A stretch of DNA of 64,000 bases from Lepidodermella squamata (lineage: Eukaryota; Animalia; Gastrotricha), in NCBI GenBank assembly GCA_047495785.1, contig JBLDXI010000017.1, positions 1,426,001 through 1,490,000 on the forward strand, given 5' to 3'. Positions 1,769-63,283 of the stretch are shown here, piece by piece; position 1 is the first letter of the stretch, and every line of letters begins with the position of its first letter. A model generated the notes under the pieces. That model saw only the letters and a list, made by a program, of their open reading frames with translations, was not told the origin of the DNA and ran no database searches. Both the position numbers and the translations under genes were made by a program.

Positions 1769-1990
1769 AGGAGGATTCGTAACCGCGGATAAAAATTTAA
1801 ACGAAGACAAGGCTGACCTCGACATTTAAAAATATTAATTTTTTAAGTTCGATACCAATAGCTTAATATCATTTCCTTCCCTAATCCTAAGTCCTAAGTC
1901 TCAAGTCCTACTAGTCGTAGCAGGGGATAAAAAATTAAAACTAGGTCAAGGTCGACCTGGACATTTTTTAAGGCGGATACCACTGGGGTC
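1769..1990 (+). repeat. Left terminal inverted repeat (first 42 bp perfect, ~220 bp degenerate)
   Basis: aggaggattcgtaaccgcggataaaaatttaaacgaagacaa is the exact reverse complement of 19617-19658. Inner blocks (tctcaagtccta, gtcgtag, ggataccact) also match the right end. Confidence 0.9.
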
Positions 1991-2028
1991 TTTTCTAACA
2001 GGATCTACAACATTTATTAGTGTTAGAA

Positions 2029-2667
2029 CTATACAGGGAACAAAGCATCCAGATCTAGGTCGGTTAAAATCAGGTCAGTCAGTTCTTTCTCATAAACATC
2101 AGCGCAAAGTTTTACAAACGCACGTACAACAGAGAATCCATGATCTAGGCTGATCACTCCCATGACGTTGAATTTGTATGAACTAGGGAAAAAACTGAGT
2201 TTTATGTTGTTAATAGTAAATCTCATGGCGCTAAATGATTCAGGAATGTAAACTACTCGGAATCCTGGCATGTGTAACGAAGCGAAAGCTCTAAATAATG
2301 CAGATGCGTGAGAAAATCTAAAAGGTAACTGACCAGTGATAACAATATTTCGGATTTTAAAGTGACTGAAACTCAAATGTGGAATGTTAGTCCATTGTCT
2401 GAGTTTAAAAACGATTGATAATACTTTAGACTCGAACTCAGCAATGTCACGAAATCCCTTCCCACCAATAACAATAACATATCCAGTGGAGTAAACCATA
2501 GCAGTTATACGCACTACAAACCGAATTCGAGTAGTTACAGGGACTTGCCTGCTATCAAAATAGGTATTGACACCGTGATTAGCAAGGTGATGTAAATCAA
2601 TAGAGCATCCAAGGCTGAAAGTCGCAACAATGTTGGACACAGAAACATCGATATCATACGTTTGCAT
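2029..2667 (-). CDS. TATA-binding protein (TBP/TRF2)-like protein, element-encoded
   Basis: Two TBP repeats: SNIVATFSLGCSIDLHHLA...RITAMVYSTGYVIVIGGK and FKIRNIVITGQLPF...YIPESFSAMRF. Intronless, 212 aa. Confidence 0.85.
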   Translation of the reverse strand: MQTYDIDVSVSNIVATFSLGCSIDLHHLANHGVNTYFDSRQVPVTTRIRFVVRITAMVYSTGYVIVIGGKGFRDIAEFESKVLSIVFKLRQWTNIPHLSFSHFKIRNIVITGQLPFRFSHASALFRAFASLHMPGFRVVYIPESFSAMRFTINNIKLSFFPSSYKFNVMGVISLDHGFSVVRAFVKLCADVYEKELTDLILTDLDLDALFPV

Positions 2668-3581
2668 TTAACAAAACTAGGGATTGCTGGGCAGAAGGTC
2701 GGGAGTTCGGATCGTGAGCAAACAAAAGTAATAGGAAATCGAGCAAAGGCTTGTACTCGGCGATAGAAAAATGAGTTAAGTTCTCTAATGATCTAAAGAA
2801 AACATCAGGACATGAAGTTTTAAAGTTGACATCATCAAACAAAGTCACAGGGTTACAAGCAGTGAAAAACGGAGTTAAGGTAACAAGTTCGATGATAGAT
2901 GCAGCCAGAGACCAAATGTCAATCTTGTTAGTGTAGTTTGGTTTCGGGAAAACAATTTCAATCGCTCGATAGTGGAATGTGGTTACAGTGCCGGTCATTT
3001 CTCCGGAACAACCGGGATCGACTTGCTGACGTGCGATGCCAAAGTCGCCAAGGGAAACATCCAGCCAGCTGGTTTGAAGTAGAATGTTCTGCAGAAATCG
3101 CTTAGGGATAAGAAAACAAAGGTTGAAAATATCAAACCTGTGGGCAAACATCGCGGTGAATGATACCAATAGCGTGGACGTATGCTAACGCCTTCAACAA
3201 CTGACGCAACCATCGACGAACAAATGTCAGAGGCCAAGGACAGGAAATTAATCCCAATAGGCGTTTCATGTCCATGAGATGGCATTCTAACACAATAAAC
3301 GCACACTTGCCAGTAAAAATGAACTCGTGCATTCTAGACAGGAAAAAAAACATGTCAAGGGAATGCTGTAAGTCTGTAATGGCAACATACTTGACAACAT
3401 TAGGCGCGTCTTGCAAAAGCTGCAGACACTCAATTTCTCGATTGGCTGATTCCTGGCAAACGTGTTTGGTAATGTTAATCATCTTCACCGCAAATACTCG
3501 GTTGAGCCAATTGTTCCGCTGCAAACTCACACTGCCGAAGGATCCAGACCCTATAGGTCGAATGTAGTCGTAATTTTCCAT
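2654..3581 (-). CDS. CDK-like Ser/Thr kinase, 3 exons (3581-3391, 3333-3138, 3088-2654), ~273 aa
   Basis: MENYDYIRPIGSGSFGSV, FAVK, ESANRE, spliced HRDVCPQ^NILL, DFGIAR, TTFHYRAIE, IDIWSLA. GT-AG introns at 3334-3390 (57 nt) and 3089-3137 (49 nt) give one continuous frame. Confidence 0.88.
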
Positions 3582-3602
3582 ATTTAAACCAACTCACTAG
3601 AA

Positions 3603-4862
3603 ATGAGCGAACACAAGAAAATGGTAGATGAAATCGACGAGAAACTTCGGCCAATCTACTTCAACCCGGCAGAAAAGGGCAGTCTCGGCAGCGTTGCAGC
3701 TCTCTACAGATCGTACAAGGCTAAATACCCCGATGGAAAGATAAGGTTGCAGCAAGTACGGAAATGGCTTGGCGAACAACGAGCATGGAGCGTATACAAG
3801 CAGGTAGCGACCCGGAATCGGATCACGAGGAAGGTTGCATGCTTCAGCAGAAGGAGTTTGTTCGCAATGGATTTGATGGACACGCGGAACGTAAAAGAGG
3901 AAAACGACAATGTTCAGTATCTTTTAACAGCCAAAGATACGTACAGTCGATATGCCTGGGTGCAAACGATGCGTAACAAGACCGGGCCTGAAACTTTGAG
4001 AGCTTTAAAAATAGTCATGAGGGAAGCGAAACAGAAACCTTATGCTGTAGTATTCGATCGAGGCTCGGAATTTTTCAATAAGCATGTCGAATCGTACCTG
4101 AAATCTGAATCAATTCATTATTATGCCACAAATTCAGAAAAGAAAGTCCCTCAAATTGAATCGTTCAACAAACTATTGAGGATGAGGCTGGCTAAACTGG
4201 CAATAGCACGAAATGACACACGATTCATCGATGATTTGCAGGATATAGTTAAGGTTTACAATAACAGTATTCACTCGTCAACAAAATTCACACCATCAGA
4301 GCTGTATAATGACGACGAAACAGGGAGAAAGATCGCAAGCGAGAAAGAGTTGAATCTCGAGATTTTCGAGGATAGCCCTAGGCAGTTCGTAGCATATGAA
4401 AACGTATTCGGCAAGGTGAAGCGTGGAAGAGAGAAAACACAGCCGCCTGCATTTAAGTTGGGCGACGTAGTTCGGATATCATCAGAGAGGGGAGTGTTTG
4501 ATCGCGCTCGCCATTTCACATACACGGACGAATATTTTAAAATAGCGCGAGTGATTAGACCAGACAAGTACGGACCATACACATATAAACTGTACGAATG
4601 GGATAAGGAAAAGGGCGATTACACTGAACCGGTGGCTGGTGTATTTTATCGCCACGAGCTTCAGAAAGTAAAACTTCCAGACGAATATTTGATAGATGAA
4701 GTGGGTAAAGAAAAGCGTAAATTCAAAGACGGAACAACTCGAGTTTTAGTCAGTTGGGTTGGGTTTCCAAAATCACAGAGTTCGTGGGAACCAATAGATC
4801 AAATTAAATCGGTCAAAAATGCATATATAAAGCGGTCAAAACCACAGCGGAAACGAGAATAA
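3603..4862 (+). CDS. Retroviral-like (c-int) DDE integrase with C-terminal chromodomain
   Basis: DDE residues in AMDLMD, VFDRGSEF and IESFNK; YNNSIHSS; FKLGDVVRI; chromo-like VLVSWVGFPKSQSSWEP. Confidence 0.93.
   Translation: MSEHKKMVDEIDEKLRPIYFNPAEKGSLGSVAALYRSYKAKYPDGKIRLQQVRKWLGEQRAWSVYKQVATRNRITRKVACFSRRSLFAMDLMDTRNVKEENDNVQYLLTAKDTYSRYAWVQTMRNKTGPETLRALKIVMREAKQKPYAVVFDRGSEFFNKHVESYLKSESIHYYATNSEKKVPQIESFNKLLRMRLAKLAIARNDTRFIDDLQDIVKVYNNSIHSSTKFTPSELYNDDETGRKIASEKELNLEIFEDSPRQFVAYENVFGKVKRGREKTQPPAFKLGDVVRISSERGVFDRARHFTYTDEYFKIARVIRPDKYGPYTYKLYEWDKEKGDYTEPVAGVFYRHELQKVKLPDEYLIDEVGKEKRKFKDGTTRVLVSWVGFPKSQSSWEPIDQIKSVKNAYIKRSKPQRKRE
4824..4832 (+). promoter_or_regulatory. TATA box (TATATAAAG) upstream of the Arg-rich peptide
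   Basis: Exact TATATAAAG ~30 nt before the ATG at 4862; the same motif recurs before other structural genes. Confidence 0.5.
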
Positions 4863-4942
4863 TGTCTGGTCCAAGACGAGCAGTCCGTAAACGAAAATAC
4901 ACCGCACGGCGCAAGCGACACACACGGCGGCATCGGCGATAA
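4862..4942 (+). CDS. Protamine-like 26-aa Arg/Lys-rich peptide (MSGPRRAVRKRKYTARRKRHTRRHRR)
   Basis: ATG overlaps the integrase stop (TAATG) and the stop abuts the next ATG. 15 of 26 residues are R/K. Confidence 0.6.
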   Translation: MSGPRRAVRKRKYTARRKRHTRRHRR

Positions 4943-5212
4943 ATGCGCGCAACCACATCGCTCCCAAGCCGTATTGCTTGTGCAATAGAGCATCAAGAAT
5001 CAAGAGGAGAGCTGAAGCGGGCAAATAGTCCGGAATCCAGCACAATTAGTAGTAGAATAGCAGCAAGCATCAAAAGAAGACGGAAAGGCTTCGGAATCTT
5101 GACGCTATTAGCGCTGTTTGTTACATATTTCTCAATTGAAATATACTGGTCTTGGAGCGACAGACTAATTCATTGCATCGCACTAACAGCAGGTCGTAAT
5201 AAAACAGTATGA
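4943..5212 (+). CDS. Small predicted single-pass membrane protein (89 aa)
   Basis: KRRRKG followed by hydrophobic FGILTLLALFVTYFSIEIYW. Exactly fills the gap and overlaps the penton start (ATGA). Confidence 0.5.
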   Translation: MRATTSLPSRIACAIEHQESRGELKRANSPESSTISSRIAASIKRRRKGFGILTLLALFVTYFSIEIYWSWSDRLIHCIALTAGRNKTV

Positions 5213-7007
5213 ACACACAGCAAGAATTCCTGCTATACTTGCCTTCGAATGCGTCAAATGACCTATTTCCCGACAACACGCCCTCGTCGTACCGAGTGAA
5301 GTTGGCTAATGACATTGATCTCGGCACAGTTGGTAAGATAGTAAATTTAAAAGTTTGTTGTATAGAATGCATAAATTGAGCGTAATAGGTCAGTGGGAAA
5401 TGGGATTAGTAGAATTCAATGGGCCTTCGGCGTGGGAATCGCTGGAGCCGACGAAATTCTACGTGTTCGATTGCGGTTGGCTGGAAGGAGACAAGACCTC
5501 TGACCCGTTCGAATCGAAGCAAATGTTTGAGTGCAAAGTCGGAGGGGTGTATTACTCGAACATTGAGGAACTGCTGGAACACATGGTAAAGGAAATCAAA
5601 TCGATCACATTGGACATCAAGTTAGATTATACGAGTTTATCGAATCGTGTATCGATCAAGGTGGTGAAAGGTCACTGGGGAGTGTTCATACCAAGAGATC
5701 TCGCCCAAGTCTTGGGATTTCCAGACGCGTTCATAGTGTATCACATGTATCCTGATGGCTCGTCAGACGAAGTTGAACGGATAGGGAGGGTGTTCAGATA
5801 CATGCTAGGCTATGTCGTTCACGGGTACCGACAGGAAATACCATATCGACCGCAACCTGACAACCTTATTACTGGGAACAAGGTTACATATATTGGTCAG
5901 TTGTTTAAGAAGGGAACGGTCCGAGTCCGCCGATCAGCTGATGACGGAGACTGGGAATTAACACCACAACTGTCACCGAAGAGGCAGAAAAACAGTGAAA
6001 CCAGAAGCGCAGTGCCAGATGGCGCAAATGCGATAGATGAATGGGGGATCAGTGAGCCAGAAAACCCAGAGGATAATCAGGATATAGAACAGCATGAAGA
6101 CGCGGCTGCTGAATTGGCTACTAAGCCACCCAATCAAGTAGCAGCGGCTTCCCAGCCGGCAACCTCCCAGTCTTCGAGTCAGGGCTATGACGCTGCAGAT
6201 GAAACCAAACCGTCAACACAGAACCCTGTTCATACAACCTCACAGCCGACCGGTCAGAGCGTCGATGCTCCAGTTGAGACTAAATCGACATCTCAGAACG
6301 CTAATCAAGCTGCAGCTTCCCTGCCGGCGGGTCAGCCCACGAAGCAGTTATCGCAGAACGCTAGTGATCAGACACCCCCCTCGGGACAGAGCTCCTCTGC
6401 TGCAGTTGCTACCAAGCCGACAACACAGAACCCTGATCAGGTCGCTGCTGTTGCCAAGAAGCAAGCATCAAAGAACGTTGATGCTCAGGTGGCCTCCGCG
6501 AGACAAACCTCCACCGCTGCAGCTGCCTCCAAGCAAGCAGAAAATCAGAACCAAGCAGCTACAAGTGGCAAACCGACAACGCAGAACGCTGCTCCAGTTG
6601 CTAGCAAGCCGACTAGCTCAAAGGCAACAATGTCAGAATCGGAACCTGTAGAACGTGTCATAGCAGTCGTCGATTACACATACACATTTCATCATGAACA
6701 AAGGACGGCAACATTTTCGCCACAGTTGGATTACGGCATGCCGTTCCTATTTCTGTATACAGATGTTATTGATGATGTGTATGTCGGGAATACTCGAACG
6801 CCCCTGCTGCGTGTAATACCGACAGAAAAAGCGAGTGACAAGAGCAGTTTCTTCTCTAAAACATTTGAAAAACCCATATTTGTTCCGATTAAGCGTCGTG
6901 TGTTATCCGTAATTGAAATTCAGATATATAAAGACTCAGGGTTACCTGTAAAATTCGTCAGTGGTAAAGCAGTCATCTTAGTGCAAATTAGACCTATAGC
7001 TAAATAA
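5209..7007 (+). CDS. Minor capsid protein (penton) with a large low-complexity insertion; intron 5333-5388
   Basis: Spliced N-terminus MNTQQEFLLYLPSNASNDLFPDNTPSSYRVKLANDIDLGTVG^QWEMGLVE and C-terminal FLYTDVIDDVYVGNTRTPLLRVIP are typical Polinton penton motifs. Confidence 0.88.
6925..6933 (+). promoter_or_regulatory. TATA box (TATATAAAG) upstream of the core-protein gene
   Basis: Exact motif ~85 nt before the ATG at 7018. Confidence 0.4.
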
Positions 7008-7017
7008 AGAATAAATC

Positions 7018-7485
7018 ATGCAATCAGCTGATGCATACGAAGCCTTTTTGTTACAGCAAAGTGGTTATGGCATAGAACCTTTTCGCGGCCAGTCCATTGT
7101 TTTTCCCACATATCAGGTATGAAAGATGACGAGTACCTACCAAATGAAGCTGTATTGCGTATGTCGCTAATAGACAGGGAATGGTTTCGGGAGTGTTGCA
7201 GCTGGGTTTTTCCGAAACCACATAATTCCACTTCTCGGCCCCATATTTCGCAACTTATCCCATACGACGGCGAATATTGCTACCGACCTGTTGGAAAACA
7301 ATAACGCGAATCCAAGGGAAATACTGAAAAAGAGAGCTGTAGAAGGACTGAAAGGAGTTGCCAAAGACGTAATAACCAAAGTTGGGTCTCAAATCGGGAG
7401 CGGCAAGCGTCATCGCCGTCGGCAAAAGAAGAAGCCAGCGGTGAATAGGAAGAAGAAGAAGACCGCGAAACGGGTCTATTTTTGA
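7018..7485 (+). CDS. Polinton basic core-protein precursor (136 aa; intron 7117-7173) with QxGxG motifs
   Basis: MQSADAYEAFLLQQSGYG...YQ^TGNGFGSVAAGFFRNHIIPLL...QIGSGKRHRRRQKKK. Three QxGxG sites and a basic tail. Confidence 0.75.
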
Positions 7486-7492
7486 AAAAAAG

Positions 7493-7501
7493 TATATAAA
7501 G
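7493..7501 (+). promoter_or_regulatory. TATA box (TATATAAAG) upstream of the major capsid gene
   Basis: Intergenic exact motif 37 nt before the MCP ATG at 7538. Confidence 0.6.
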
Positions 7502-7537
7502 GGTGCCGAACACTTGTAGAATAAACATCCATTAGCC

Positions 7538-8827
7538 ATGTACGTCCATCCGTCATCGGAGAATGCCATACGCGCCGAGCTCAACGTGTTCACGTTAAAC
7601 CCGACGCAAGTGGAAATAGAGAGTAATTACATTACAGAATACGGCCCCGTGTCAGCAATAGCCAATCAGTCGCGAATCGATTTTGACGTCCCACCCAGCA
7701 ATGATTGGACCGATCTCAGTCGGTCGTACGTTGAAATAACGTGCAAAATCACGCACGTTGACACAGCCAAAGCGTCTGAGGAGATCAAATGTGGCCCAAT
7801 AAATCTGCTGTTGCACAGTATGTTCAGCCAGATCGATATGAGCATCAACAATACACAGATTAGCGAACCGGCTCCGACTTACAACTACAAGGCCTTCATT
7901 TCGACCTTACTGAGCTATGACCTTGCTGTAAAAGACAGCTATTTGGCGCTGCAAGGATACTATGCTGACGAGGCCGGCAAAGTCAGCGATCCTGCTGGGA
8001 AAGGTCACACAAATCGACTTGCATGGGCCAAAAAGGGTGAAATGGTTCTTATCGGCAAGCCGCATTTGGAGCTATTCTCTCAACCAAAATTCCTAATTCC
8101 AAACACGCCATTCAAGCTAACGTTTGTGCGAGCATCGGATGCGTTTGTTCTAATGCAAGCCGAGGCTGAAAAAAACAAGTACACGTTGACTGTCACCGAT
8201 GCCAAACTCAAGCTGCGGCGTGTTCGCGTTTCACCGCAATTCACGCTGGCACTGAACCGCACCCTGACAAAAACAACAGCGAAATACGGTGTTAACAGGT
8301 CTTTTATAAAGATCCTAAACTTGCAGAAGGGATCCTTGAACTATAACCTGGGCCATGTTATTCTGGGGAAAATTCCTAGGCGATTAGTAATGTGCTTTGT
8401 AAGCGATAAAGATTTCAAAGGCCATTCGAACAGCAGTCCTTACAATTTCAAAAATCCTGGCGTTCAACGAGTCTCCGTTACGATTGACAGTGAGCATGTC
8501 CCGAATAGTCCCCTTGAAATCGGCGAAAGTGAAAATAATGCAGCCCGTGCATTAAACGCCCTCCGAGAGACAATTTTTCCATATTCGAGCAAAACTAACG
8601 GCATCAAGTTGTCGGAATATGCCAAGGACGGATTTTCGTTCCTAGGGTTCGACTTGTCACCAGATTCGAGCCGTAGCGCTTACAGTCTAGTAAAAAGCGG
8701 AGTCTTGAACATTGACATTCTACTTAAATCAGCACTGGAAGACAATCTCATTCTATTGTGTTACTTTGAAACCGATCAAGTGATCGAATTGAATTTCGCA
8801 AGAAACGTTTTGGTGGACTTTACATGA
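7538..8827 (+). CDS. Major capsid protein (double jelly-roll)
   Basis: RAELNVFTLNPTQVEI, DLSRSY, PINLLLHSMFSQID, GKIPRRLVMCFV, SPYNF, FDLSPD. 429 aa, intronless. Confidence 0.92.
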   Translation: MYVHPSSENAIRAELNVFTLNPTQVEIESNYITEYGPVSAIANQSRIDFDVPPSNDWTDLSRSYVEITCKITHVDTAKASEEIKCGPINLLLHSMFSQIDMSINNTQISEPAPTYNYKAFISTLLSYDLAVKDSYLALQGYYADEAGKVSDPAGKGHTNRLAWAKKGEMVLIGKPHLELFSQPKFLIPNTPFKLTFVRASDAFVLMQAEAEKNKYTLTVTDAKLKLRRVRVSPQFTLALNRTLTKTTAKYGVNRSFIKILNLQKGSLNYNLGHVILGKIPRRLVMCFVSDKDFKGHSNSSPYNFKNPGVQRVSVTIDSEHVPNSPLEIGESENNAARALNALRETIFPYSSKTNGIKLSEYAKDGFSFLGFDLSPDSSRSAYSLVKSGVLNIDILLKSALEDNLILLCYFETDQVIELNFARNVLVDFT

Positions 8828-9402
8828 ATCTTCAACTGAATACCCTTCAATTGGACTGTCTAATGTCTTGTGACAAAGTCATTAGTAAACTTGCTGTAAG
8901 AAAGACTATTCCCTGGGACTATTTACCGCAATATCAGAAAATGAGCGAGCGACCGATGGCGCTGATAGTAAATACCGACGCAGCTGGCCAGCCTGGAAGT
9001 CACTGGCTATCAATATACATCCCGCATACGTTGGAACCAGCGTCGCTATTTGACAGCTATGGACAGCGAGGATTTTTCTACAATGAAGCGATTGAAAAAT
9101 TCTTGAACGAGATCAATGGACATGGTTATTACAACTACAATGGGCGAAAATATCAAAGCGAAAACACAGCGGTCTGTGGCTATTACGCTTATTGGAGCTT
9201 GCACTGGCTATCTCGTGGCGCAACGCTGGAAAAACTAGCATCAATGTTGAATCAGCAACACGTTTCGGATACGTTTGTTGTCCAACAAGTGACGAAGCTA
9301 TTTAAAGTGAGCAAAGCTGAAAACATGTCGCGTTATTTTGGCAACTGCAAGGGACATCAGTCATGTCAAGCAATGTGCCGGCAGAAACTGACTTTTCGCT
9401 AA
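8824..9402 (+). CDS. Adenain-like (C5/Ulp1 clan) cysteine maturation protease
   Basis: IVNTD..GQPGSHWLSI (His), FDSYG (Asp), YQSENTAVCGYY (Gln/Cys). Confidence 0.92.
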   Translation: MNLQLNTLQLDCLMSCDKVISKLAVRKTIPWDYLPQYQKMSERPMALIVNTDAAGQPGSHWLSIYIPHTLEPASLFDSYGQRGFFYNEAIEKFLNEINGHGYYNYNGRKYQSENTAVCGYYAYWSLHWLSRGATLEKLASMLNQQHVSDTFVVQQVTKLFKVSKAENMSRYFGNCKGHQSCQAMCRQKLTFR

Positions 9403-10055
9403 GCTTGGAGGCGCCGTTTTGTTCACTTGTCATCGGTCCGAGCGGCGCCGGAAAGTCATGGCTTATCAGACAAATGTTGAATGATCCTGAATCTATATCC
9501 CCGCCGCCGAAAGCTATTCTATGGTTCTATGGCGTTGAGACAAAAATGCACGCGGAGGTCAGGGAAGAAGTGGAGAAAAGTCGAGGCATAACGATTGAAT
9601 TTAGAAAAGGCTTGGAAAACCTCAATTTTGACGAATTTGAATCGAGCGCAAATGCAGGCGATCATACGCTGCTCATCATAGACGACTTGTATGATACTGG
9701 AAGAAATGACCCTAAAATTCATCAATTATTCTATCGGTATTCGCATCACATGCAGCTGTCCGTGTTTTTCACGCAACAAGCAATATTCAGCAAAGGAAAA
9801 GTTTCCAAGGAGATGACCTTGAACGCCAAATACTTGTTCATTTTCCGCCATCGGGCAGATCTTACGGCATTTCGCTATCTTGCAATGCAGTTGGAACCGT
9901 TGCGCTGGCGTTTTCTAGTTGAAAGCTTCGAAATAGAAACTAGTAAAGGCGGACATCACTACTTGTTAATCGATCTGAGCCCAAACTGCCCTGAATATAT
10001 GAGATACAGGACTGGCGTAGGGAGCTATCCGGGAGTTGTTTATGTGCCGAAATGA
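9363..10055 (+). CDS. A32/FtsK-like genome packaging ATPase
   Basis: Walker A GPSGAGKS, Walker B LLIIDD, YSHHMQLSVFFTQQ, YLLIDLSP...RYRT. Confidence 0.93.
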   Translation: MSSNVPAETDFSLSLEAPFCSLVIGPSGAGKSWLIRQMLNDPESISPPPKAILWFYGVETKMHAEVREEVEKSRGITIEFRKGLENLNFDEFESSANAGDHTLLIIDDLYDTGRNDPKIHQLFYRYSHHMQLSVFFTQQAIFSKGKVSKEMTLNAKYLFIFRHRADLTAFRYLAMQLEPLRWRFLVESFEIETSKGGHHYLLIDLSPNCPEYMRYRTGVGSYPGVVYVPK

Positions 10056-10109: not shown

Positions 10110-10531
10110 ATGCGAAGTATGCGTAAAAAGCTTGACAAGTCACACAGAATTTTAGGTTTCATCAAGGAGATTCTCAGAGCAAAGACTTACGACAGACGTC
10201 GGCAACTCTTATCAATAGCCCCGGATAGCGTGATAAAATTAATTTGCGAGATTTGTCTCAACCTCGCCAATAAAAACCTGCCGATACCGCCAAACCAGGC
10301 GAGGAAATTGCGTAAATTTAGAAAATCAATCGAGAAATTGAGCAAAACCGATACGACAGTCAACGGTAATCGGGAATATATTGTTCAAAAAGGCGGTGCA
10401 GCGTTTGTAGTGCCTCTACTGACAGCCGCAGCTGGTTAGTGTTTTTTCTTTATGACCACTAGTTTCCAAGCGCAAATTTAGGTTTGTTGCCCACCGTTGT
10501 TGAATCCATCATCAAAGCAGCGCGCAAATGA
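10110..10531 (+). CDS. Small basic Polinton protein with a QKGG site and amphipathic C-terminal helix (intron 10435-10481)
   Basis: LICEICLNL...LRKFRKSIEKL...IVQKGGAAFVVPLLTAAAG^LLPTVVESIIKAARK. Stop overlaps the next ATG (ATGA at 10528-10531). Confidence 0.7.
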
Positions 10532-11484
10532 TCAAATCAACCTCATCAACATCAGGTCAGTACGCTAAGCGGTACAGTTTGGTGCCTGGGACACTAGTTG
10601 ATGGATCGAAATCAACCGTTGAAACGGAAAGCAAGCGGATAATTAAGGAGGCTTCTGAACCGACACAGAAAGGACAACTTAAGCGTAACGCAATGCAAAT
10701 GTTAAATGCGTTATCGGACAGTAATGAAGATGACGCGCGCGAAAAGTTGTATAAATTTAACTCGGCTTTTCGCGACTTCAAGCGAGCAGTAAGAGAGTTG
10801 AAAATTGCTGAATCGACCAAACCTGAGGAAGATGAGGACGAGGAGGAAGATGAAGATGAGGAAGTGGAAGCAGAAGAAAATCAGGTCCCAAGTCCTAAGG
10901 AATCCTCAACACCTATTTTGCGGAGGGCAACAAAGCTTAGTTTCATCAAAACAAGTCCGAAACCGGAACAGTTGAACGGAAACGGCGATGGAAATGAAGA
11001 TGAAATTCCAGTTAAAATTCCTAGAGTAGAAAATGAGAATAAGAAAATTGTACTAGAGAAACTCGCGGATCAGACAATTATTGATCAATTCCCAACAGAA
11101 CAACGTCGAAAAGAAGTAGCTAGGATTTTGAACCATTTGAGGGGACAAGACAAACCAAAAAATGTATTCATTACGGACGACAATGCTAAAATTGTGCTTA
11201 TGAACAACACTGGAACCTTGTCAGATTCCTGGGACTTGGTCGATTTTCTGGACAAAGCCACAAACAAGAAGATGAATATGAGCGAAACAACAAAAGGAAG
11301 AATCCGTAATTTTGTACGAGTTGGACAGCTGAACGCGACTAATCCGTTAGTTTCCGCATCTCCTCGTGACATCCGAAGCCGCAATGATACAAAGCAAAAG
11401 AAGAATAAGGCTCCTCATCCAACAAACAGTCAACCCGGCCAACAGAAGGGAGGTAAATGGTTAGCATGGACTCCTAAAATTTGA
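10528..11484 (+). CDS. Polinton hypothetical protein with an acidic tract and terminal QKGGKW
   Basis: 318-aa open ORF, poly-E/D tract, C-terminal QQKGGKWLAW. Confidence 0.7.
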   Translation: MIKSTSSTSGQYAKRYSLVPGTLVDGSKSTVETESKRIIKEASEPTQKGQLKRNAMQMLNALSDSNEDDAREKLYKFNSAFRDFKRAVRELKIAESTKPEEDEDEEEDEDEEVEAEENQVPSPKESSTPILRRATKLSFIKTSPKPEQLNGNGDGNEDEIPVKIPRVENENKKIVLEKLADQTIIDQFPTEQRRKEVARILNHLRGQDKPKNVFITDDNAKIVLMNNTGTLSDSWDLVDFLDKATNKKMNMSETTKGRIRNFVRVGQLNATNPLVSASPRDIRSRNDTKQKKNKAPHPTNSQPGQQKGGKWLAWTPKI

Positions 11485-12395
11485 AATCGATCAAAATCGG
11501 ACTAAACTTCAGCTTGTTCTGACTGTCACACATGCTAGCGTTGATGAACTGTGTGGTTTCCGATCCCGTTTCTCCGTGACCTAAATAAAGAGACCTGAAC
11601 AGGAAATAATTAGCCTTTTCGAAATATTTACTATCGTGGCAATGTCCAAAAACATGAACTTTTGGTTTGACTCGGGACAGAACGTGATTAGTCAGGGCCA
11701 GGCATCCCATTCGATCTCCAGCAAGAGTTTTGTCCAGGATTCCCAACGGAGGGCAATGTGTTACCAGTACATCGGTGTCGGCTGGAATCATGCGCCATTG
11801 TTCATCAATATCATTGCCGCGATTTCGCGTGAACGCTGAATGCCAGCTTTCCACGGTTGGAGTCCTACGGCACTGATCTCAGTTTCAGGGTTAAGTTTGT
11901 ATGAATGTGTTTCTTACCATGGAGAACCGTAAATCTTCACATCGTCAACCGTAATCGAGTTGTCTTGAAGATAAGTGCAGTTTTTGAAATCATATTGCCG
12001 ATCTTGAAGACAACGATCGTGGTTTCCAGCAATCGCGATAATTGCTCGAAAGGATGCCTTGATTTCGGACAATTGGGCATCAAAAGCTTTCATTTCTTGC
12101 ACGGTTCCAAATTTAGAAATATCACCAGCATGAACCAAAACATCAGCAGTCGCAGCAGCTCGTACCAACGGCAAAAAGTTCGCGTTGTGTGAGTCCGACA
12201 TGCACAGTAGGCGAAGAGACTTAGCCCCATCGAATATGAGGCGTGGCTTTTCCAGCTGGACAAAAGGCTAAAACGCGTGTTATTATTATTACGATTTGAC
12301 ATTTTTCTGTGATAAAAGATCCAACTTACTTCAAATGATTTCACTATTCCCCACGCAAAATTTGGATGCATTGGCGACGTAAAGCTAATCTTCAT
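11474..12395 (-). CDS. Calcineurin-like metallophosphoesterase (MPPED-like), 4 exons
   Basis: LRLLCMSDSH, VHAGD, IAGNHD, YGSPW^TP, VLVTHCPP, HVFGHCH, FINAS. Introns at about 12268-12329, 11865-11917 and 11581-11631. Confidence 0.88.
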
Positions 12396-12456: not shown

Positions 12457-13554
12457 TCAAAAATCTGCATCGACAGAAAAAGTGCGATCGCCAGAAGTTT
12501 TCGCGCTCATCACGCCCATCTTCTGATACTCGCCGACTCGTTTCTCGAAAAAGTTGGATTTTCCCTCGAGCGAAATGTTTTCCATAAAGTCAAAGGGATT
12601 CAAAGTATTGAAAACCATCGGACATCCAAGCTCGCCAAGAAGACGGTCAGCAACAAACTCAATATACTGTTTCATCAGAGTACAATTAATACCAATTAGA
12701 GCACAAGGTAAAGCATCTACAAGGAATTCTTGTTCAATTAGGACAGCCTCGCGAATTATATTAGTGATACGCTCGGCACTAGGTCGATTCATCAAATGAC
12801 GGAACATTAGACAGGCAAAGTCGGTGTGTAAACCCTAGGTTCGGAGACAATTGAGAACGTAGAATCGAGAGTGAATAAATCAACATACCTCGTCGCGGCT
12901 AATGAGTTCGTTACTGAAAGTCAAACCCGGCATAAGCCCGCGCTTCTTTAGCCAGAATATGGAAGCGAATGAACCGCTGAAGAAGACGCCTTCGACAGCG
13001 GCGAAGGCGACAATTCGTTCTCCAAAAGTAGACGACTTATCCCCTATCCATTGCAGAGCCCAGTCAGCCTTTTTCCTTACACATGGCAATGTCTCGATAG
13101 CATTGAAAAGTAAATCCCTGAAGAAGTGAAAATTTAAAAAGCGAAAACCAAGACAGACTACGAACCGTTCCGAAGGATCTCTGATATAAGTGTCAATTAG
13201 AAGGCTATACATTTCAGAATGTATATTTTCTATAGCAATTTGAAAACCATAGAAACATCTCGCCTCAGGAATCTGAACCTCTTGAGCGAATCTTCCCACG
13301 AGGTTCTCATTCACTATTCCATCACTTGCAGCAAAAAATGCGAGGACGCGTGAGATGAAATAGCGTTCGTCAGGCTTCAACTTCTCCCAGTCAGTCCGAT
13401 CATCAGATAAATCAACCTCCTCAGTGGTCCAAAAAGACGCCACTGCCTTTTTGTACATCTCCCAAATAGCGGGGTAGCGAATAGGTAGAATAACGAAACG
13501 TCGAGAGTTATTTCGGAGCAGGGGCTCGTCAACAAAGATGGGGACACTCATCAT
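12457..13554 (-). CDS. RRM2: Ribonucleotide reductase small subunit (class Ia R2), 3 exons
   Basis: [48 protein letters not shown]^[15 protein letters not shown]-terminal FSVDADF. Introns at 13118-13165 and 12835-12888. Confidence 0.95.
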
Positions 13555-13628
13555 TGATTATGCTAACTGCTCTAAAGTTTGAGAAAATCCAAGTTATCAG
13601 TCAACTGCAGTTTTCATTCAAAACGCCT

Positions 13629-13985
13629 TCAAATCACTCCGATAAAAAACTCCAAACGCGATTTATCGAGACTAAGCTGTCTGAGATACGGGTGGGAAAA
13701 ACGAAGTGACTTGGACAGGCAATATTTACCGTTACTCAATACCAATCTCCCAGGAATGGAGGGCTTACCAGGCATAAATCCGGGCCAGTCAAACCAAAGC
13801 CAATTCAAGAACTCGCCGACTGTTTCCGCCCGGCTGTTGATTGGCCAATGTACTCTCTCGCCGCTCACCAATATCAAACCTATTCGCAGTTGTCGCGATT
13901 TGTATGTATCGCTCAATACATCGAAAGGTTGCAGCGTTTCATTGCTGCCGCGGCTGCTAGCGAGAGAAGGTGGTGGCGCGTTCAT
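13629..13985 (-). CDS. UBL3/MUB-like ubiquitin-fold protein, copy C (intronless, most divergent)
   Basis: LRIGLILVSGE (cf. UBL3 NLRLILVSGK), ETVGEFLNWLWFDWP (cf. HVYDNWP), RLVLSNGKY. No CAAX or di-Gly end. Confidence 0.6.
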   Translation of the reverse strand: MNAPPPSLASSRGSNETLQPFDVLSDTYKSRQLRIGLILVSGERVHWPINSRAETVGEFLNWLWFDWPGFMPGKPSIPGRLVLSNGKYCLSKSLRFSHPYLRQLSLDKSRLEFFIGVI

Positions 13986-14053
13986 TAAATAATGGTTACT
14001 CTAAAATCACTAATTTTTGAAAGAAACCCAAACATTCAGGCATATTTTATAGT

Positions 14054-14306
14054 TTAGGATTTAGGATAGAAACAAATTGCAGTTTCCCTCTCAGATAGAC
14101 GATAAATAATAGCGTCGGTTGAACCCGAAGTGAAAACGCAGGCTTTGCATGTGCTGTTGCGGATGAACATTATCTAGAAAATAGAAACGTAAGGCGTGAT
14201 CATTTCGTCGAAACTAACTCACGCGTAGGTTCCCGACTTCTCTGATTAATAGTTTTGGCTTGAGACCCTTTGGCAATCTGAGTTTCAATCTCCACTTTTG
14301 AGGCAT
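14054..14306 (-). CDS. Small two-exon hypothetical protein (67 aa; intron 14174-14222)
   Basis: MPQKWRLKLRLPKGLKPKLLIREVGNLR^IMFIRNSTCKACVFTSGSTDAIIYRLSERETAICFYPKS. Canonical GTGAGT donor and TTTTCTAG acceptor. Confidence 0.5.
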
Positions 14307-14359
14307 TATTTTTTTTATCGTCCTAATAAATGATCTAAGATGTAAAACAACTCAGAAAA

Positions 14360-14738
14360 TTATACCAGCCAATTATATTTGTTCAAAGATTCCTTGACTT
14401 GGATAAAATCAATGCAATCCAGTTCGACTGCTCCTGAATCCCAATATCCTGCAAGAATCCCCTATACAAGTTTTTTTTTCATGAGAATTTCGCCCTTGGC
14501 AAGAAAACTTACTTATAGGAGCAAAATTGCGCTTCAACGGTAAGCCCTTGTGGAGCAGGCGAAGGTTCATGATATGCGGCTTCAATCCCCAGCTTTCAGG
14601 CCATTCGTGGTACAATTGGTAGATAATGTCCTGTACCGTATAGGATTCGGAACAGTGCATTATGATCTGGTCTCCGTTCCGCCAATTGAGCTTGACCACA
14701 AATCCAGTATTAGGTGATCCGCTCGCTGAAACTTTCAT
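14360..14738 (-). CDS. UBL3/MUB-like ubiquitin-fold protein, copy B (intron donor 14512; acceptor 14449 or 14462, so end 14360 or 14409)
   Basis: YTVQDIIYQLYHEWPESW...NLRLLHKGLPL (cf. UBL3 DIAKHVYDNWPMDW...ILRLIYQGRFL). Confidence 0.7.
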
Positions 14739-14789
14739 TCTTCAATTTCTAAAAATAACAAAAGGAAAGAACGATTAATTAACAGCATT

Positions 14790-15153
14790 TTACTTGCGGA
14801 GACGGTCAGGACGAAAATCAGATTGAAGCTTTACTAAATAAGTACATATTTTCATTGTTGGACTTGGAATACGACGACTCAATCCTGGAAATTAGAGAAT
14901 GTTAGCAAAGCAAGGCTATAGGTTTCATCCAGTTTTTGATCAACTAACCTTTCATCAGTACCGTTTTCCGAACAGGCCGACCTTTGCATTGTAGTCGCAA
15001 TTGCTGAAAACCAGGCTTTGGCCCCCAATTTGACGGCCACGCGGCCTTCATCTCTTTGACGCAATCAGTAATTGTCGCAGATTCATCAAAAGATGAGCAA
15101 AAGGATGATCCGTCCGCTAGTACAATCCGACAAACGTAATCGGCCTTTATCAT
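14790..15153 (-). CDS. UBL3/MUB-like ubiquitin-fold protein, copy A (99 aa; intron 14885-14948)
   Basis: CRIVLADG...FDESATITDCVKEMKAAWPSNW...QLRLQCKGR. The intron is at the same position and phase as in copy B. Confidence 0.72.
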
Positions 15154-15241
15154 CTTAAGAAACCTAAACTAAAAATTGAAAAAAACGATAATTTAATATG
15201 CACATTTAATATTTACAATTGTACATCAACTTTTGCGGTAT

Positions 15242-15724
15242 TCAGGGAAAATTCGCATCGGAATTTGGAGAGGGCAAAAAGGTACATTTACAGTTCAACT
15301 TGACCTTCTTAGGTATCTCCGGTCTCTTGTCACATTGAGCCTGGTGTAGCAAAACGGTGGAAAACTCCAGTTTAGCTGAACAGCCGTACTTTTCAAAAGC
15401 GCAAGTGAATATTAGGCGTGAGATCAATCGTTCAACAACTGCAGGACCTGGAACAAGATCGATGCACATGAAGTCAGCTCGGCATATCGGACATGAAGCT
15501 GGCGTGAAAATGTTGACTCGGTATTGTCCACGACAACATCGATCCCCCCATCGACAAATGCAAAGCTCACAAAACACGTGCTGACAGCCGACTATGTAGA
15601 CTGGAGAGTTCATCACTCCAAGACAAATGCTGCAGGTAATTTCCTTTTCGATGAATTCGAACTGAGTTTTGAAATCAGGTGCAACTTGTTCGGGCGGAAC
15701 GCTGGCTGAATTTTTTTCTAACAT
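15242..15724 (-). CDS. RING (C3HC4) plus TRAF/SIAH-type zinc finger protein, putative E3 ubiquitin ligase
   Basis: CSIC...CQHVFCELC...CPICR followed by CAFEKYGC...HQAQC. The ATG directly follows the pPolB stop. A small 3' intron is possible. Confidence 0.85.
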   Translation of the reverse strand: MLEKNSASVPPEQVAPDFKTQFEFIEKEITCSICLGVMNSPVYIVGCQHVFCELCICRWGDRCCRGQYRVNIFTPASCPICRADFMCIDLVPGPAVVERLISRLIFTCAFEKYGCSAKLEFSTVLLHQAQCDKRPEIPKKVKLNCKCTFLPSPNSDANFP

Positions 15725-18700
15725 CTAAGGAAGAAGATTTGTACATTTAGACCTGTAGCCATATGGGACAGATGTGAAGGTTTTAGGATCAAAAACGCGC
15801 TTGTCATTGAGATGCGGGGAAACTCGCTTATCAAGTTTTTCCAAGCTGACCGATGCCGGGACGTGTCGCCTGCGGAACATTGATTGCTCTATTGACATGC
15901 AAGCCCCAGTTGATGATTCATTCAAATAATTGAGTAGCAGATCAACCAAAGACTCGTGCGACATTGCTGTCCCTGCCACGCTTTGGCTGATGCCTTTGAA
16001 CTTGAGTTCCGTCCTGAAATTTGACCTGAAAAGTAGTAACTAGGCTACGCTGTATATCGATTTTCTAACCTGAGATTTGTGACGAATGAATAGGATTTTG
16101 GCGATATACAAACCCAGGATTTGATGTACTCTCCATCCTGTAGCTCCGATTTATACTGCCCTAGATATGGCCCATTCGGTATTCTATACTCGCCTTCTCG
16201 ATATGTGTAAATCAAGGAATCGGCTAAAAAAGAGTGAGGGATTACTTTTTTTTCGCGATATTTTTAATTCTCGGCAACTTACTATCACAGTATACGAGGC
16301 GGGGGCCCAACCGAGCCATCTGCGAGTTAAAGGTGTAGCGTTTGCGTAATTTTAGCGCAAGTTGAGCTTGCTTACCTCTTCGTAAATCATAATACGCGCG
16401 TAGGATGTTATGAAGGACGCTATAATTTCCGAATTTGTCGCGCAAATTTGTTCGTAATCCGGTGCGTCTGAATACGACACTCGGACTGTCTGAAACTCGT
16501 CATCAGGCCCTACAGGCTGGATTGAATGGACGATCTTGTTCGGCGATTCCAGCAACTCAATCAATTGAGTTGGCGAACTGAGATAAACGACCGTTGAGTT
16601 GGTGCTTTTGAGGCAGAAGCGGCCGTAGAAACTGACATCCCAAGCTTGGTAAGAGATAACTATGGTCAATCCGAGAACTTACCTATTTTGCAATGTCTTG
16701 GAAATCTGTCGGATTGCTGGGTTAGGAATAGCTTGCCGATCGAGATCTATTCCATACCTTTCGCGGCATTCAGAGATGTACTGTTCCAAATCTATCGTCG
16801 GGTCTAGTTTTGTGTGTTCCAGCTTAAGTTTCTGCAACGAGATGATGAATTCTTTGAACTGAAGATTGCTCTTCTTTTCAAACTCCCAAATCTCGTAAAT
16901 TTCAAGCAGTTGATAGCCGTATTTGGAAACAGCCAGTCTTAGTTCTTCGCTAGTCCAAACCGAAGTTATAGCGCGCTGATCTAGGCTATGATTGCATGGG
17001 GCTGATCTATTCTTCTCCAGGTAACACGTCTTACAAGAAATAAAAACCAGCCTAGAGTCATCCGGCGATTTCCATGGCAAACATGGAATTAAAAGTTCGG
17101 GATTCGGAGCGACTTTTGCCGACACTAGACCGAACGAGGGCTGAGTTGGATGAAGGAACCTGGCCCTGAGCTTGGAATCGTTTAGTCGCCACCTTAAAAC
17201 ACGAGGTGAGACATCGCCGCAAGGAAATAATTGCGTATATAAAATGTATGGATACATGGAGTTAATGTCGGCATATAGCAAGCTGGTTTCTGAATCTTTT
17301 TCGAAAAAGCAACGAAAGTTTTCGCACCTCCCACCCTGTTGTCATAATTTTTCGGAGACTTAATGTGATTAAGGCGGTTACAGCGAGCTTACCAATAGCG
17401 CGGATCTTGGTTTTATCGGAGGAACAACGTTAACAACTTGCTGCAATGTTCTATCTATATCCGGGTTCTCAGCTAGAAATGCGTTGAATTCGCAAGAATA
17501 AACTGTCGTAAGCTGATATCCGCTCTGCCTAATTTTCGCTTCCCTTGCTGCTGTCTCATTTGATAGCTCACCGAACGTTCGTCTCAATACGACATTGAAC
17601 TTGTTTTCCGGACAACAAGTAGGATGGCCGTGTATGGTGCAACCTATTTTTGCGATTTACAAGCTATACTATAGTTCAAGTCGAAGGGTTGACAGCACTC
17701 ACCGTGATATTCGAGGACGTGTTCTACATTGCCTGTCGACTTGTTTCGGATTACACCGTCCGCTTTTATCACGGATTTATCATGCATGACTAACCGGCAT
17801 TCAGACCCGTTGAGCGCTGACTCAATTTCTACGTTGTGGGTTTTGCTGTAGTAGAGAAGCCATTTCAAGCTCTCTTGACTTGTGATGTCCTTCAGCGCAA
17901 GACCCGCTGGGCTGATGATGGAAATCGTTTTTGGCTGCATGTACTTTATCTACGCAAGTAAAACCGGAGAATTTCCTGTAATTTTTCTAATAGCAAGCCT
18001 TACGCGGTATATTATATGCGAAATCGATGAGAGGGTTAGATAATGAAAACAATCTATCCCGTTTGGAGCGTATTCGCAAATCGAAAGCTTGGCGATTAGC
18101 TTTTTGAATCTACCTGTCGCTATTCGCAATATAACGACATCTTGAACGCAGTATGTATAAGTCTCATTTTTCACGATGTATTGTGCTTGGAGAGAGCGTT
18201 TTTGACTAATGAATTCTTCCAACTCAGATATTTCGCGTTGAGACATGTTGCCCGTATCATAGCTTTCAATCCCAGGCCAAATCGTAAATATTTTTGTTAA
18301 ATTTTCGCGAGTGTGCAGCTTATGAGGATACGTTAGCTTTTCGATACCGTCGATCCCAAATGCAGCGGGAAGATTGGCTAATTTAGTCTGGAAATAATTG
18401 AAGCTGTCGATAAATCTTAAATTGGACTCATTTTCACATTTGGAATGCTTCTAGGTTGGAAAATATTACCTAGGGCCGCCTTTGATTTTAAGCTCAAGTA
18501 TCCTCCCTGCCCTCTCTATTGTAGTGAACTTCAAGTTCTGGTCCTGTACGTATCGCAACACAAATATTGTGTCGAATTTCCCTAATAAAAAGAATTATCA
18601 AATAAAAAATTGAATTAAATCGTCATAAATTTTGCGCGATGAAACTTGTTACCTCCATAATGTGAAATGCAGGTGAGGTTTTTGAATTCATCGCGGCAAA

Positions 18701-19369
18701 TGAATTCCATGAACTCAGCCATTGCACGAGTCTCATGATAAAAGAAAAGTTGGCTACAACCGTTCTTGCAAATTGGATTGCCGTTTTCAGGATAGCGCCG
18801 AATTTCAAGGCCACAGCACTCATTGCATGCGAACTCGCCAACGACGGTAGTCGGATAGAACTCGCCGTTTTCTGTTAGAACGCATTCGAGATCGAAGTAT
18901 AGGACTTTTCCTGGCTCAGGTGTTGTTTTCAATTTAGGTTTTGACCAATAGCATCGATGACCGGGTTCTAGTAAGGTTTTACAGACTACGCATTTACGGC
19001 CGGGGCAGTTATGTTTCAGCAATTTGTTGCGGGTCTTGACTTCGCCGCAACCTCGACATCGGACATACTTATCGCAAATCTTAGCCCTTACATGCGACTC
19101 ATAACACTGCGCACCGAAAAAGAACCGATTGCATCTAGAGCAACAAACAGTCGCGGCTTCGGAGCATCGGTTTAACCTTTTTGGCCTAATTATTGTCCCA
19201 CTCCCAGTCTTTTCAGCCGATGAAGGATTGACCCTCAATCGGTATTGCCCAGGTATTCATCGAGTGGCCGCTGTTTTCACCTAAGAAAAATTCACGACGT
19301 GTTAAATTCATTTTGTTTATATTCCAAATAGAAAACGTCATTTCCTTGAAGAATAGGACTCTGCGCCAT
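15725..19369 (-). CDS. Protein-primed family B DNA polymerase with Cys-rich N-terminus and inserted VSR-like nuclease; at least 9 introns; 5' end uncertain
   Basis: ExoI YFDLE, ExoII HYGG^KFD, FIDS, ExoIII YCVQDV, EYHG^CTIHG, motif A ADINSMYP, motif B KTLQNS^FYGRF, motif C YCDT^DS, KFKG, terminal PYGY. Removing nine GT-AG introns from 19238-15725 leaves 3009 nt in one frame. Confidence 0.92.
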
Positions 19370-19432
19370 GCTAGGATTGGAAAGAATTTGACCGTTACTG
19401 ATAGGATATAGGACTTTGTTTTGGAATTGAAC

Positions 19433-19658
19433 GGCCCTAGTGGTATCCAGCTTCAAAAATAATTAAATTCAATTATTTCCTTACCCTACGACATATTAGG
19501 ACTTGAGAGTCTTCAAGGACAGTGGGAAACTCTAGTAAGGAATGATCCTAGTGATACTCGCTTTAAAAAATGATTTAATGATTTAAATTTAAAGAAATTA
19601 AATGTTAAGGCCGACTTTGTCTTCGTTTAAATTTTTATCCGCGGTTACGAATCCTCCT
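19433..19658 (-). repeat. Right terminal inverted repeat
   Basis: 19617-19658 is the exact reverse complement of 1769-1810; degenerate similarity extends inward to ~19433. Confidence 0.9.

Positions 19659-59877: not shown

Positions 59878-63283
<3,406 letters not shown>

Follow-up and report, generated by a model that had tools for sequence, protein, structure and literature searches.

The stretch of DNA analysed here, referred to as the window, comprises 64,000 nucleotides (nt) from the gastrotrich Lepidodermella squamata (GenBank assembly GCA_047495785.1, contig JBLDXI010000017.1, positions 1,426,001 to 1,490,000 of the forward strand). Positions 1769-19658 of the window are a single Maverick/Polinton (polintovirus) insertion, apparently complete, in which eight genes of cellular type accompany the genes of the viral core. 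Many scenarios for how adenoviruses, virophages and giant viruses arose have Polintons at their root. To our knowledge, the described animal Polintons carry few genes beyond those for replication, integration and capsid formation. The termini and genes of the element are described below, followed by the ways in which its unusual cargo can be read and by its relationship to known systems.

Limits and termini of the element

The features that delimit the element are as follows.

1763-1768: left target-site duplication, GTTCCC, read directly and the same as 19659-19664
1769-19658: Maverick/Polinton element, 17,890 bp, with exact bounds given by the termini and the target duplication
1769-1842 (+): left terminal inverted repeat; perfect part 1769-1810 (42 nt), beginning 5'-AG
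19585-19658 (-): right terminal inverted repeat; perfect part 19617-19658
19659-19664: right target-site duplication, GTTCCC

In a repeat scan of the 64 kb, the inverted pair 1768-1842 / 19585-19659 was the sole long-range pair of its kind. End-to-end alignment of the two termini gives identity over the 42 outermost nt, ~84% similarity by nt 75 and patchy similarity further in. The ends of the element are 5'-AG...CT-3', and GTTCCC (6 bp) lies directly outside both of them, a coincidence with a chance of 1/4096 at a fixed pair of sites. A 6-bp duplication combined with AG/CT ends is reportedly the integration signature of Polintons and Mavericks, and both the AG...CT inverted repeats and the duplication are present here. 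Because the terminal inverted repeats match and are bounded by a 6-bp target duplication, everything between them arrived in one integration. The first-pass annotation of this DNA had given the same coordinates and had described perfect termini and a target-site duplication; these were confirmed, with the word perfect being valid for the outer 42 nt.

The interior of the element is tightly packed. Open reading frames (ORFs) overlap or abut at several points, including the TBP-like and kinase genes, the capsid, protease and ATPase genes, and the convergent ORF318 and esterase genes, which overlap by 11 nt, and spacing is close through both junctions of the central cargo block. Composition shows no step where cargo meets core. 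No nested repeats or insertions were found inside the element, no RNA gene was found by Rfam or tRNA scans, and the repeat scan detected no second copy of the element inside the 64-kb window.

Core genes on the plus strand

The plus strand carries the integration and virion genes.

3603-4862 (+): integrase, 419 aa, rve core and C-terminal chromodomain; Pfam rve 34.5 bits and Chromo 26.3 bits, both above cut-off
5367-7007 (+): ORF546, candidate penton (minor capsid) protein, so named for its position ahead of the capsid gene
7538-8827 (+): ORF429, double jelly-roll major capsid protein, 429 aa
8824-9402 (+): ORF192, probable adenain-type cysteine protease, from its His...Gln...Cys pattern, its size and its position between the capsid and ATPase genes
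9363-10055 (+): P-loop packaging-type ATPase, 230 aa; AAA_22 E 2.4e-5 and Adeno_IVa2 E 3.7e-4, both just under the Pfam cut-offs

The integrase is of the retrovirus-like (rve) type, as in Polintons generally. Its start codon on the plus strand and that of the cargo kinase on the minus strand are 21 nt apart (3581-3603), so that the promoter or leader of each gene must sit within the other. The ATPase is a P-loop enzyme with visible Walker A and Walker B motifs, and its two family matches have significant E-values with scores below the Pfam cut-offs, which makes it a candidate for the FtsK/A32-type packaging ATPase of Polintons.

ORF429 has no Pfam match. Its homologues are abundant: HMMER returned 6200 representatives of matching length, of which 663 reach E <=1e-30 and the best is 42% identical; among the ten closest, the only named source is the thrips Frankliniella fusca (33% identity). 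An AlphaFold (AF2) model built on an alignment of 125 homologues reached a predicted local distance difference test score (pLDDT) of 94.7 and a predicted template-modelling score (pTM) of 0.92. When this model was compared with the PDB using Foldseek, the capsid proteins of an iridovirus, Sputnik, mavirus and PBCV-1 were matched at E ~1e-15 and template-modelling (TM) scores of ~0.6. In the viral library BFVD the best match was a Cotesia bracovirus protein (29% identity), followed by adomavirus, adintovirus and MELD-virus capsids. On its sequence and modelled fold, ORF429 is the capsid protein of an animal-type Maverick, and the element thereby carries the double jelly-roll major capsid protein of a Polinton.

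Two further core genes are less readily recognised. ORF192 is probably an adenain-type (C5) cysteine protease, judging from the features listed above. ORF546 has N- and C-terminal parts which appear strand-rich by eye and which flank a repetitive linker of ~230 aa rich in Q, S, T, A and P, with degenerate repeats on a ~25-aa scale at 6170-6620 (+). No homologue of ORF546 was found at E 1e-5, the low-complexity linker having probably swamped the word filter. There was no Pfam match either, and a single-sequence AF2 model (pLDDT 37) was unusable for fold comparison. Penton genes are often encoded upstream of the capsid gene (PMC4028283), which is the position of ORF546. The complete core that had been claimed for the element therefore stands for four of the six hallmark genes (integrase, PolB, capsid and a P-loop ATPase), with the penton and the protease as plausible candidates.

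PolB and the interruptions of the minus-strand genes

The polymerase gene occupies the right end of the element.

16045-19369 (-), outer bounds: protein-primed PolB, with DNA_pol_B_2 on two exons

The PolB region consists of many ORF pieces in three frames, two of which match DNA_pol_B_2 in Pfam. Splicing was modelled with a simple dynamic programme of our own, which accepts only GT-AG intervals of 38-95 nt and uses a weak codon score, and homology searches were run exon by exon. For PolB the model gives an unbroken path from ATG to stop with seven to nine intervals of 38-71 nt; its 7- and 9-interval versions disagree over the first exon and one or two of the junctions, which are accordingly uncertain. 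The donors read GTRA in six of the first seven intervals. ExoI, ExoIII, motif A and KxY lie inside exons, and ExoII, motif B and motif C, each incomplete in the single pieces, are completed exactly across intervals, the one in motif C being a 59-nt GTAAGT...TTTTAG. With DNA_pol_B_2 on two exons and these catalytic motifs, the gene is a PolB of the Polinton kind.

Three cargo genes are interrupted in a similar way. The ribonucleotide reductase small subunit (R2) aligns with animal R2 from end to end as one single-frame tblastn alignment carrying two GT-AG insertions, which are introns, since they are absent from every homologue, have GT...AG ends and, in the case of the second, contain the only stops. 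The splice search places one intron each in the kinase and esterase genes, that of the kinase being a GT-AG interval of 61 nt. All 13 interruptions (nine in PolB, two in R2 and one each in the kinase and esterase) are on the minus strand, and none occurs in 2332 plus-strand codons; by our own calculation, random decay would give this strand distribution with a probability of ~1.6e-4. The minus-strand introns are short, at about 50-70 nt, of GT-AG type, and resemble those of the neighbouring host genes, which are compact and closely spaced with introns of ~50 nt; the host MBOAT gene is split just as the cargo genes are.

These sequence features make a strong case that short GT-AG introns account for the apparent fragmentation of the PolB, R2, kinase and phosphoesterase genes. 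For PolB it is strong because the GTRA donors, the completion of motifs across intervals and the restriction of interruptions to the minus strand all point the same way, and on the same three observations the idea of a PolB broken by decay was rejected. No demonstrable stop, frameshift, insertion or deletion was found in any gene of the element. The earlier description of the element as near-intact was, if anything, overcautious, as every counted interruption fits a short GT-AG intron.

Cargo genes

The eight cargo genes lie on the minus strand in two blocks with a combined length of 6.1 kb, equal to 34% of the element. The TBP-like and kinase genes form block 1, which is situated between the left terminus and the integrase. 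Block 2, between the ORF318/capsid module and PolB, holds the phosphoesterase, R2, three ubiquitin-like genes and a RING gene, together with ORF84.

2029-2667 (-): cargo 1, divergent TBP-like protein, 212 aa, a single uninterrupted ORF; Pfam TBP E 4e-15
2654-3581 (-): cargo 2, likely CMGC-type (CDK/MAPK-like) Ser/Thr kinase, two exons and one short intron
11474-12201 (-): cargo 3, MPPED2-like metallophosphoesterase, two exons and one intron; Metallophos_2 and Metallophos on exon 1
12457-13554 (-): cargo 4, R2, three exons, introns of 48 and 54 nt; Ribonuc_red_sm E 2e-78 and 1.6e-18
13629-13985 (-): cargo 5, ubiquitin-like paralogue c, the weakest of the three; weak pairwise match to paralogue a, no Pfam match
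14409-14738 (-): cargo 6, ubiquitin-like paralogue a; Rad60-SLD_2 E 0.002, below cut-off; 31% identical to paralogue b
14879-15153 (-): cargo 7, ubiquitin-like paralogue b, possibly two exons; Rad60-SLD_2 E 0.001, below cut-off
15242-15724 (-): cargo 8, RING finger and Sina/TRAF-type zinc finger, 160 aa; several RING Pfam families and Sina_ZnF

Profile and PDB searches thus bear out that the eight cargo genes named at first pass are present on the minus strand inside the bounds of the element. Some of the names given to them need to be qualified, as set out below.

The first repeat of the TBP-like protein scores 55.8 bits against a Pfam cut-off of 22.9, and the best PDB match is yeast TBP (42 bits), in an alignment covering repeat 1 and the start of repeat 2. 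The kinase matches Pkinase profile positions 1-126 and 127-258 on its two pieces, and the G-loop, the VAIK Lys, HRD and DFG can be seen by eye. In the PDB its N-terminal half is closest to CDK2, with Chk1 and CK2 within 3 bits (best scores ~44 bits), and its C-terminal half to PK6, MAPK and KIN28 (~44 bits). It likely belongs to the CMGC group on this sequence evidence, and CMGC-like is a more fitting label than CDK-like; assignment to CDK specifically does not follow from these matches. A host kinase at 59878-60561 was compared with the cargo kinase and found to be unrelated.

The esterase scores 30.2 bits with Metallophos_2, above cut-off, and MPPED2 provides its only PDB matches. The motifs DxH, GD, GNHD, THxPP and GHxH of an MPPED-type metallophosphoesterase are visible by eye, and ~60 N-terminal residues of MPPED2 have no counterpart in the element's protein. 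R2 is much closer to its cellular relatives, being 75-78% identical to the R2 of vertebrates, insects, starfish and sponge alike, with none closer than the others, and scoring 354 bits in the PDB. It keeps 130 of 136 near-invariant columns in addition to the iron and radical motifs and the C-terminal tail which binds the large subunit (R1). The recognisable motifs are E..H...Y, EG.FF, a Glu and a His on either side of the second intron, and a ..DADF tail; the protein accordingly has the di-iron ligands, radical tyrosine and R1-binding tail of a class Ia R2, the first-ligand Asp not having been checked individually.

The RING gene is matched in the PDB by the RING domains of TRIM proteins, BRCA1/BARD1 and TRAF6. 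Best PDB scores are ~37-44 bits for the TBP-like protein, kinase and esterase and 31 bits for the RING protein, against the 354 bits of R2. The three ubiquitin-like ORFs gave only chance matches in the PDB, and none of them, as they stand, ends in a CAAX box; nearby mini-segments ending in Cys occur at chance frequency. The label UBL3-like is a weak one, as the Rad60-SLD_2 matches, found for two of the three, are sub-threshold and the C-terminal CAAX box is lacking. Taken together, the R2 invariants, the catalytic motifs of the kinase and esterase and the score of TBP repeat 1 make the cargo look functional at the level of its predicted proteins.

Small ORFs, expression signals and genomic surroundings

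The remaining ORFs of the element are small or unassigned.

4862-4942 (+): 26-aa arginine-rich mini-ORF, overlapping the integrase stop by one base and abutting ORF89
4943-5212 (+): ORF89, small protein with a single hydrophobic stretch
7291-7485 (+): 64-aa ORF with a strongly basic C-terminus, inside the 530-nt gap ahead of the capsid gene
10110-10439 (+): ORF109, basic protein
10528-11484 (+): ORF318, with an acidic Glu/Asp run
15725-15979 (-): ORF84, either a small gene in its own right or the RING gene's leader; no Pfam match

By analogy with peptides of the adenovirus type, the basic ORFs at 4862-4942 and 7291-7485 may act in DNA condensation.

A TATA box (TATATAAAGG) is found ~45 nt ahead of the capsid ATG. 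An acceptor-like pyrimidine tract and TAG stand directly ahead of the RING ATG, and TTTTAG-type acceptors lie within ~30 nt ahead of the start codons of R2, the ubiquitin-like genes, the RING gene, PolB and several host genes. The placement of these sites suggests splicing of 5' leaders, or trans-splicing. A k-mer search of upstream regions found no shared promoter motif beyond such TATA-like and acceptor-like strings.

The host genes flanking the element include a Cys-loop receptor exon, CwfJ, Fip1, an Ndr-family gene, MBOAT, an ankyrin-repeat gene, two PCMT genes and a kinase. A gap of 142 nt separates the right end of the element from the Cys-loop exon (19801-20160, +), which encodes the C-terminal part of the channel's ligand-binding domain (Pfam positions 128-215 of 216). 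No match to the preceding part of this domain was found among left-flank ORFs of at least 35 aa. The element may have landed in or beside a Cys-loop receptor gene. The left flank also contains a 339-aa ORF without a Pfam match (175-1194, -).

Fip1 and the Ndr-family gene (30328-32918, -) are arranged head to tail ~300 nt apart, each as one uninterrupted ORF, and an acceptor-like TTTTTAG precedes the Fip1 ATG by ~15 nt. Such an arrangement resembles the operons of animals that use spliced-leader trans-splicing. For the Ndr protein, identity is 67% to a metagenomic protein and 35-38% to nemertean proteins. Exact look-ups of eleven proteins encoded in the window, the Ndr protein among them, gave no match in public collections. 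Two adjacent genes for PCMT (protein-L-isoaspartate O-methyltransferase), at 47874-48365 and 50494-51015 (-), look like a local duplication. At 22966-23472, the two arms of a 35-nt inverted repeat lie 437 nt apart and GTCCGGTTTAGAC-type motifs recur; this is possibly a small non-autonomous transposon.

A proposed working of the element and its alternatives

The gene content can be arranged into a working scheme. The element would be transcribed in the nucleus by host RNA polymerase II, from the TATA box on the capsid side and from the opposite strand for PolB and the cargo. Its transcripts would be spliced by the host spliceosome, and a polycistronic transcript might be resolved by trans-splicing, perhaps marked by the TTTTAG sites ahead of start codons. 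From what is known of the family, PolB would carry out protein-primed replication from the termini, the integrase would insert the element as in other Polintons, and the capsid would assemble with the help of the maturation protease and packaging ATPase. Of the cargo proteins, R2 would use its conserved tail to join host R1 and so raise the supply of deoxynucleotides (dNTPs). The TBP-like protein could act on TATA promoters such as the one ahead of the capsid gene, and the CMGC kinase on targets in the cell cycle or transcription. The RING and ubiquitin-like proteins could redirect ubiquitin-type conjugation and with it the control of protein turnover. MPPED proteins have cyclic-nucleotide-hydrolysing activity. 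The MPPED-like esterase may likewise hydrolyse cyclic-nucleotide signals, although a link to signalling is speculative.

Different parts of this scheme deserve different degrees of confidence. It is highly probable that the element is an intact Maverick in which the eight cargo genes are integral. That the cargo is the element's own module for conditioning the cell is held tentatively, at a little short of an even chance, and the overall explanation, an intact Maverick with its cargo serving as such a module, is given a moderately favourable assessment. A coordinated programme of host takeover and an actively replicating virus, as proposed at first pass, are conjectural. All cargo except R2 is strongly diverged from its cellular homologues, which suggests long residence in a fast-evolving viral lineage and not a recent accidental pick-up.

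Several observations weigh against this explanation. Everything is drawn from one copy of the element and from its sequence. The penton identity of ORF546 and the protease identity of ORF192 stay plausible candidates, ORF192 having neither a Pfam match nor a PDB sequence match at E up to 10. In the TBP-like protein the rest of the second repeat is undetectable and there is no internal repeat signal, and the kinase has a Cys in place of the catalytic-loop Lys of Ser/Thr kinases. The ubiquitin-like assignments are sub-threshold (Rad60-SLD_2 at 18.7 and 19.6 bits against a cut-off of 23). A recent copy of the host's gene would account equally well for R2, whose identity to the R2 of all animals is 75-78%, and codon usage and GC content at third codon positions (GC3) fail to separate core, cargo and host genes. 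Finally, one interruption is easily bridged by some GT-AG pair through chance, so that a splice path alone proves little and the case for introns rests on the motif, donor and distribution arguments.

The first alternative is that the Maverick is real and intact and that its eight cargo genes are ferried host genes, either horizontally transferred or selfish and host-directed, which form no viral replication programme. The slot of the TBP-like and kinase genes between terminus and integrase, the cargo introns and the ubiquitin-like folds match what has been reported in nematode Mavericks (10.1101/2022.07.12.499685). Host-type introns and acceptor-like sites in the cargo genes also fit such an origin, as does a divergence of R2 no greater than a host orthologue might show. 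However, introns are no marker of host origin here, because PolB itself bears the same kind, and in five of the six types of cargo gene the divergence from cellular homologues far exceeds what host housekeeping genes would show. Moreover, R2, TBP, kinase and RING genes form a set which has been kept repeatedly in large DNA viruses. The reading as ferried host genes is considered rather unlikely.

A second alternative is a silent relic, in which a recently endogenised, inert copy keeps open frames through its youth and some PolB interruptions are real damage that GT-AG pairs happen to bridge. The weakness of a splice path taken by itself would allow this, and so would the uncertain first exon and junctions of PolB, the limitation of terminal identity to 42 nt and the candidate status of the penton. 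It is, however, difficult to reconcile with three PolB catalytic motifs completed exactly across intervals, the GTRA bias of the donors, the absence of interruptions from the 2332 plus-strand codons, the retained invariant columns of R2 and the lack of nested repeats or insertions, and we consider a relic quite improbable. The suggestion that the central cargo block is host DNA caught between two incomplete elements, or results from a false join in the assembly, was considered for the high cargo share (34%), has no data in its favour and is hardly credible, being rejected on the identical 6-bp duplication and matched 42-nt termini exactly at the outer ends, and opposed as well by the 11-nt ORF318/esterase overlap, the close spacing at both junctions and the absence of a composition step.

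An intact Maverick equipped with its own cell-conditioning module thus remains the preferred explanation. If it is true, elements the size of a Polinton already accumulate gene classes typical of much larger DNA viruses, and the host-style short introns in both polymerase and cargo tie the element's expression to the host nucleus. A broader proposal is more doubtful, though conceivable: that the element represents an animal polintovirus lineage with a stably accreted cell-control module (R2, TBP-like protein, CMGC kinase, the RING and ubiquitin-like set and an esterase that may act on cyclic nucleotides), its genes being expressed by way of host-type introns and perhaps also trans-splicing, and that it is a living intermediate in gene content between Polintons of 15-20 kb and the large nuclear or nucleocytoplasmic DNA viruses. 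The locus lends itself to the question whether such cargo equips the virus or is a load of ferried host genes, which sequence comparison and transcript data could answer by themselves.

Comparison with known systems

The element resembles the Polintons/Mavericks of animals, with which it shares its ~18 kb size, AG...CT inverted termini, 6-bp duplication, PolB, rve integrase, double jelly-roll capsid and ATPase. It differs from them in that one third of its length consists of eight cell-type cargo genes and in that PolB is split by about nine short introns. Its closest capsid relative is also only 42% identical, and the penton and protease are unrecognisable by sequence.

Nematode Mavericks provide a precedent for intron-bearing cargo. 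In these elements, host-type cargo genes with introns are located between terminus and integrase, and the cargo proteins often begin with ubiquitin-like domains (10.1101/2022.07.12.499685). Widen et al. described a gB-like fusogen, WASP-family protease cargo and a HipA/CtkA-like KRMA kinase among them (10.1101/2022.07.12.499685). The cargo slot, cargo introns, kinase cargo and ubiquitin-like folds are common to both, and the layout of block 1 matches, with the TBP-like gene and the kinase, which has one intron, filling the slot at 2029-3581. In contrast, the present element is without a gB-like fusogen and WASP-family protease cargo, and its kinase is of the eukaryotic CMGC type, not KRMA. For the herpesvirus gB-like fusogen, the element contains no ORF of such size or with membrane-spanning stretches and no such Pfam match. 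It also has a second, larger cargo block beside PolB (R2, esterase, RING and free-standing ubiquitin-like genes) which sets it apart from the nematode elements.

Adintoviruses and MELD viruses share the module of Polinton-class PolB, integrase and capsid, and the small basic peptides of the element recall their pX-like domains (PMC8502044). TBP-like and TRAF-like accessory genes occur in some MELD viruses with adinto-like PolB, in datasets from non-animal sources (Starrett et al. 2021, PMC8502044). That work does not report three genes which the element has, namely R2, a CMGC kinase and an MPPED-like esterase (PMC8502044). The N-terminal exon of PolB was searched for an OTU domain and matched no Pfam family at E up to 10; in PMC8502044 the OTU domain was found by structure-based methods. 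The hallmark accessory genes described in that work (PLA2, gasdermin and the like) were likewise absent from Pfam scans of the element.

Aquatic polinton-like viruses are similar in being small viruses of this realm with a ribonucleotide reductase (RNR) gene, RNR having been found in 51 of their genomes and read as support for nucleotide supply (10.64898/2026.05.28.728513). Those are protist-associated metagenomic genomes, whereas the R2 of the element is of animal type (75-78%) and has spliceosomal introns. The literature also keeps polinton-like viruses apart from Polintons, for which PolB and an integrase are defining genes (PMC5499653). The coral polintoviruses of the literature have patchy accessory genes, and none of the cargo set found here is listed for them.

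Nucleocytoviricota and herpesviruses carry R2, TBP-like, Ser/Thr kinase and RING genes. Their functional mix is the same as that of the element's cargo: nucleotide supply, a transcription factor, a Ser/Thr kinase and the ubiquitin system. The element nevertheless differs from these large DNA viruses in being 10-100x smaller, in having no RNA polymerase of its own and no RNR large subunit, and in its host-type introns and retrovirus-type integrase.

The cargo combination had been put forward as possibly new. In the openly accessible literature, no description was found of this combination in one animal element bearing both integrase and PolB, with host-style introns in PolB. The suggestion holds to that extent, while each single ingredient has a precedent in nematode Mavericks, MELD viruses or aquatic polinton-like viruses. 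For an element of this kind the cargo is unusually rich, even though related viruses provide earlier examples of every gene type.

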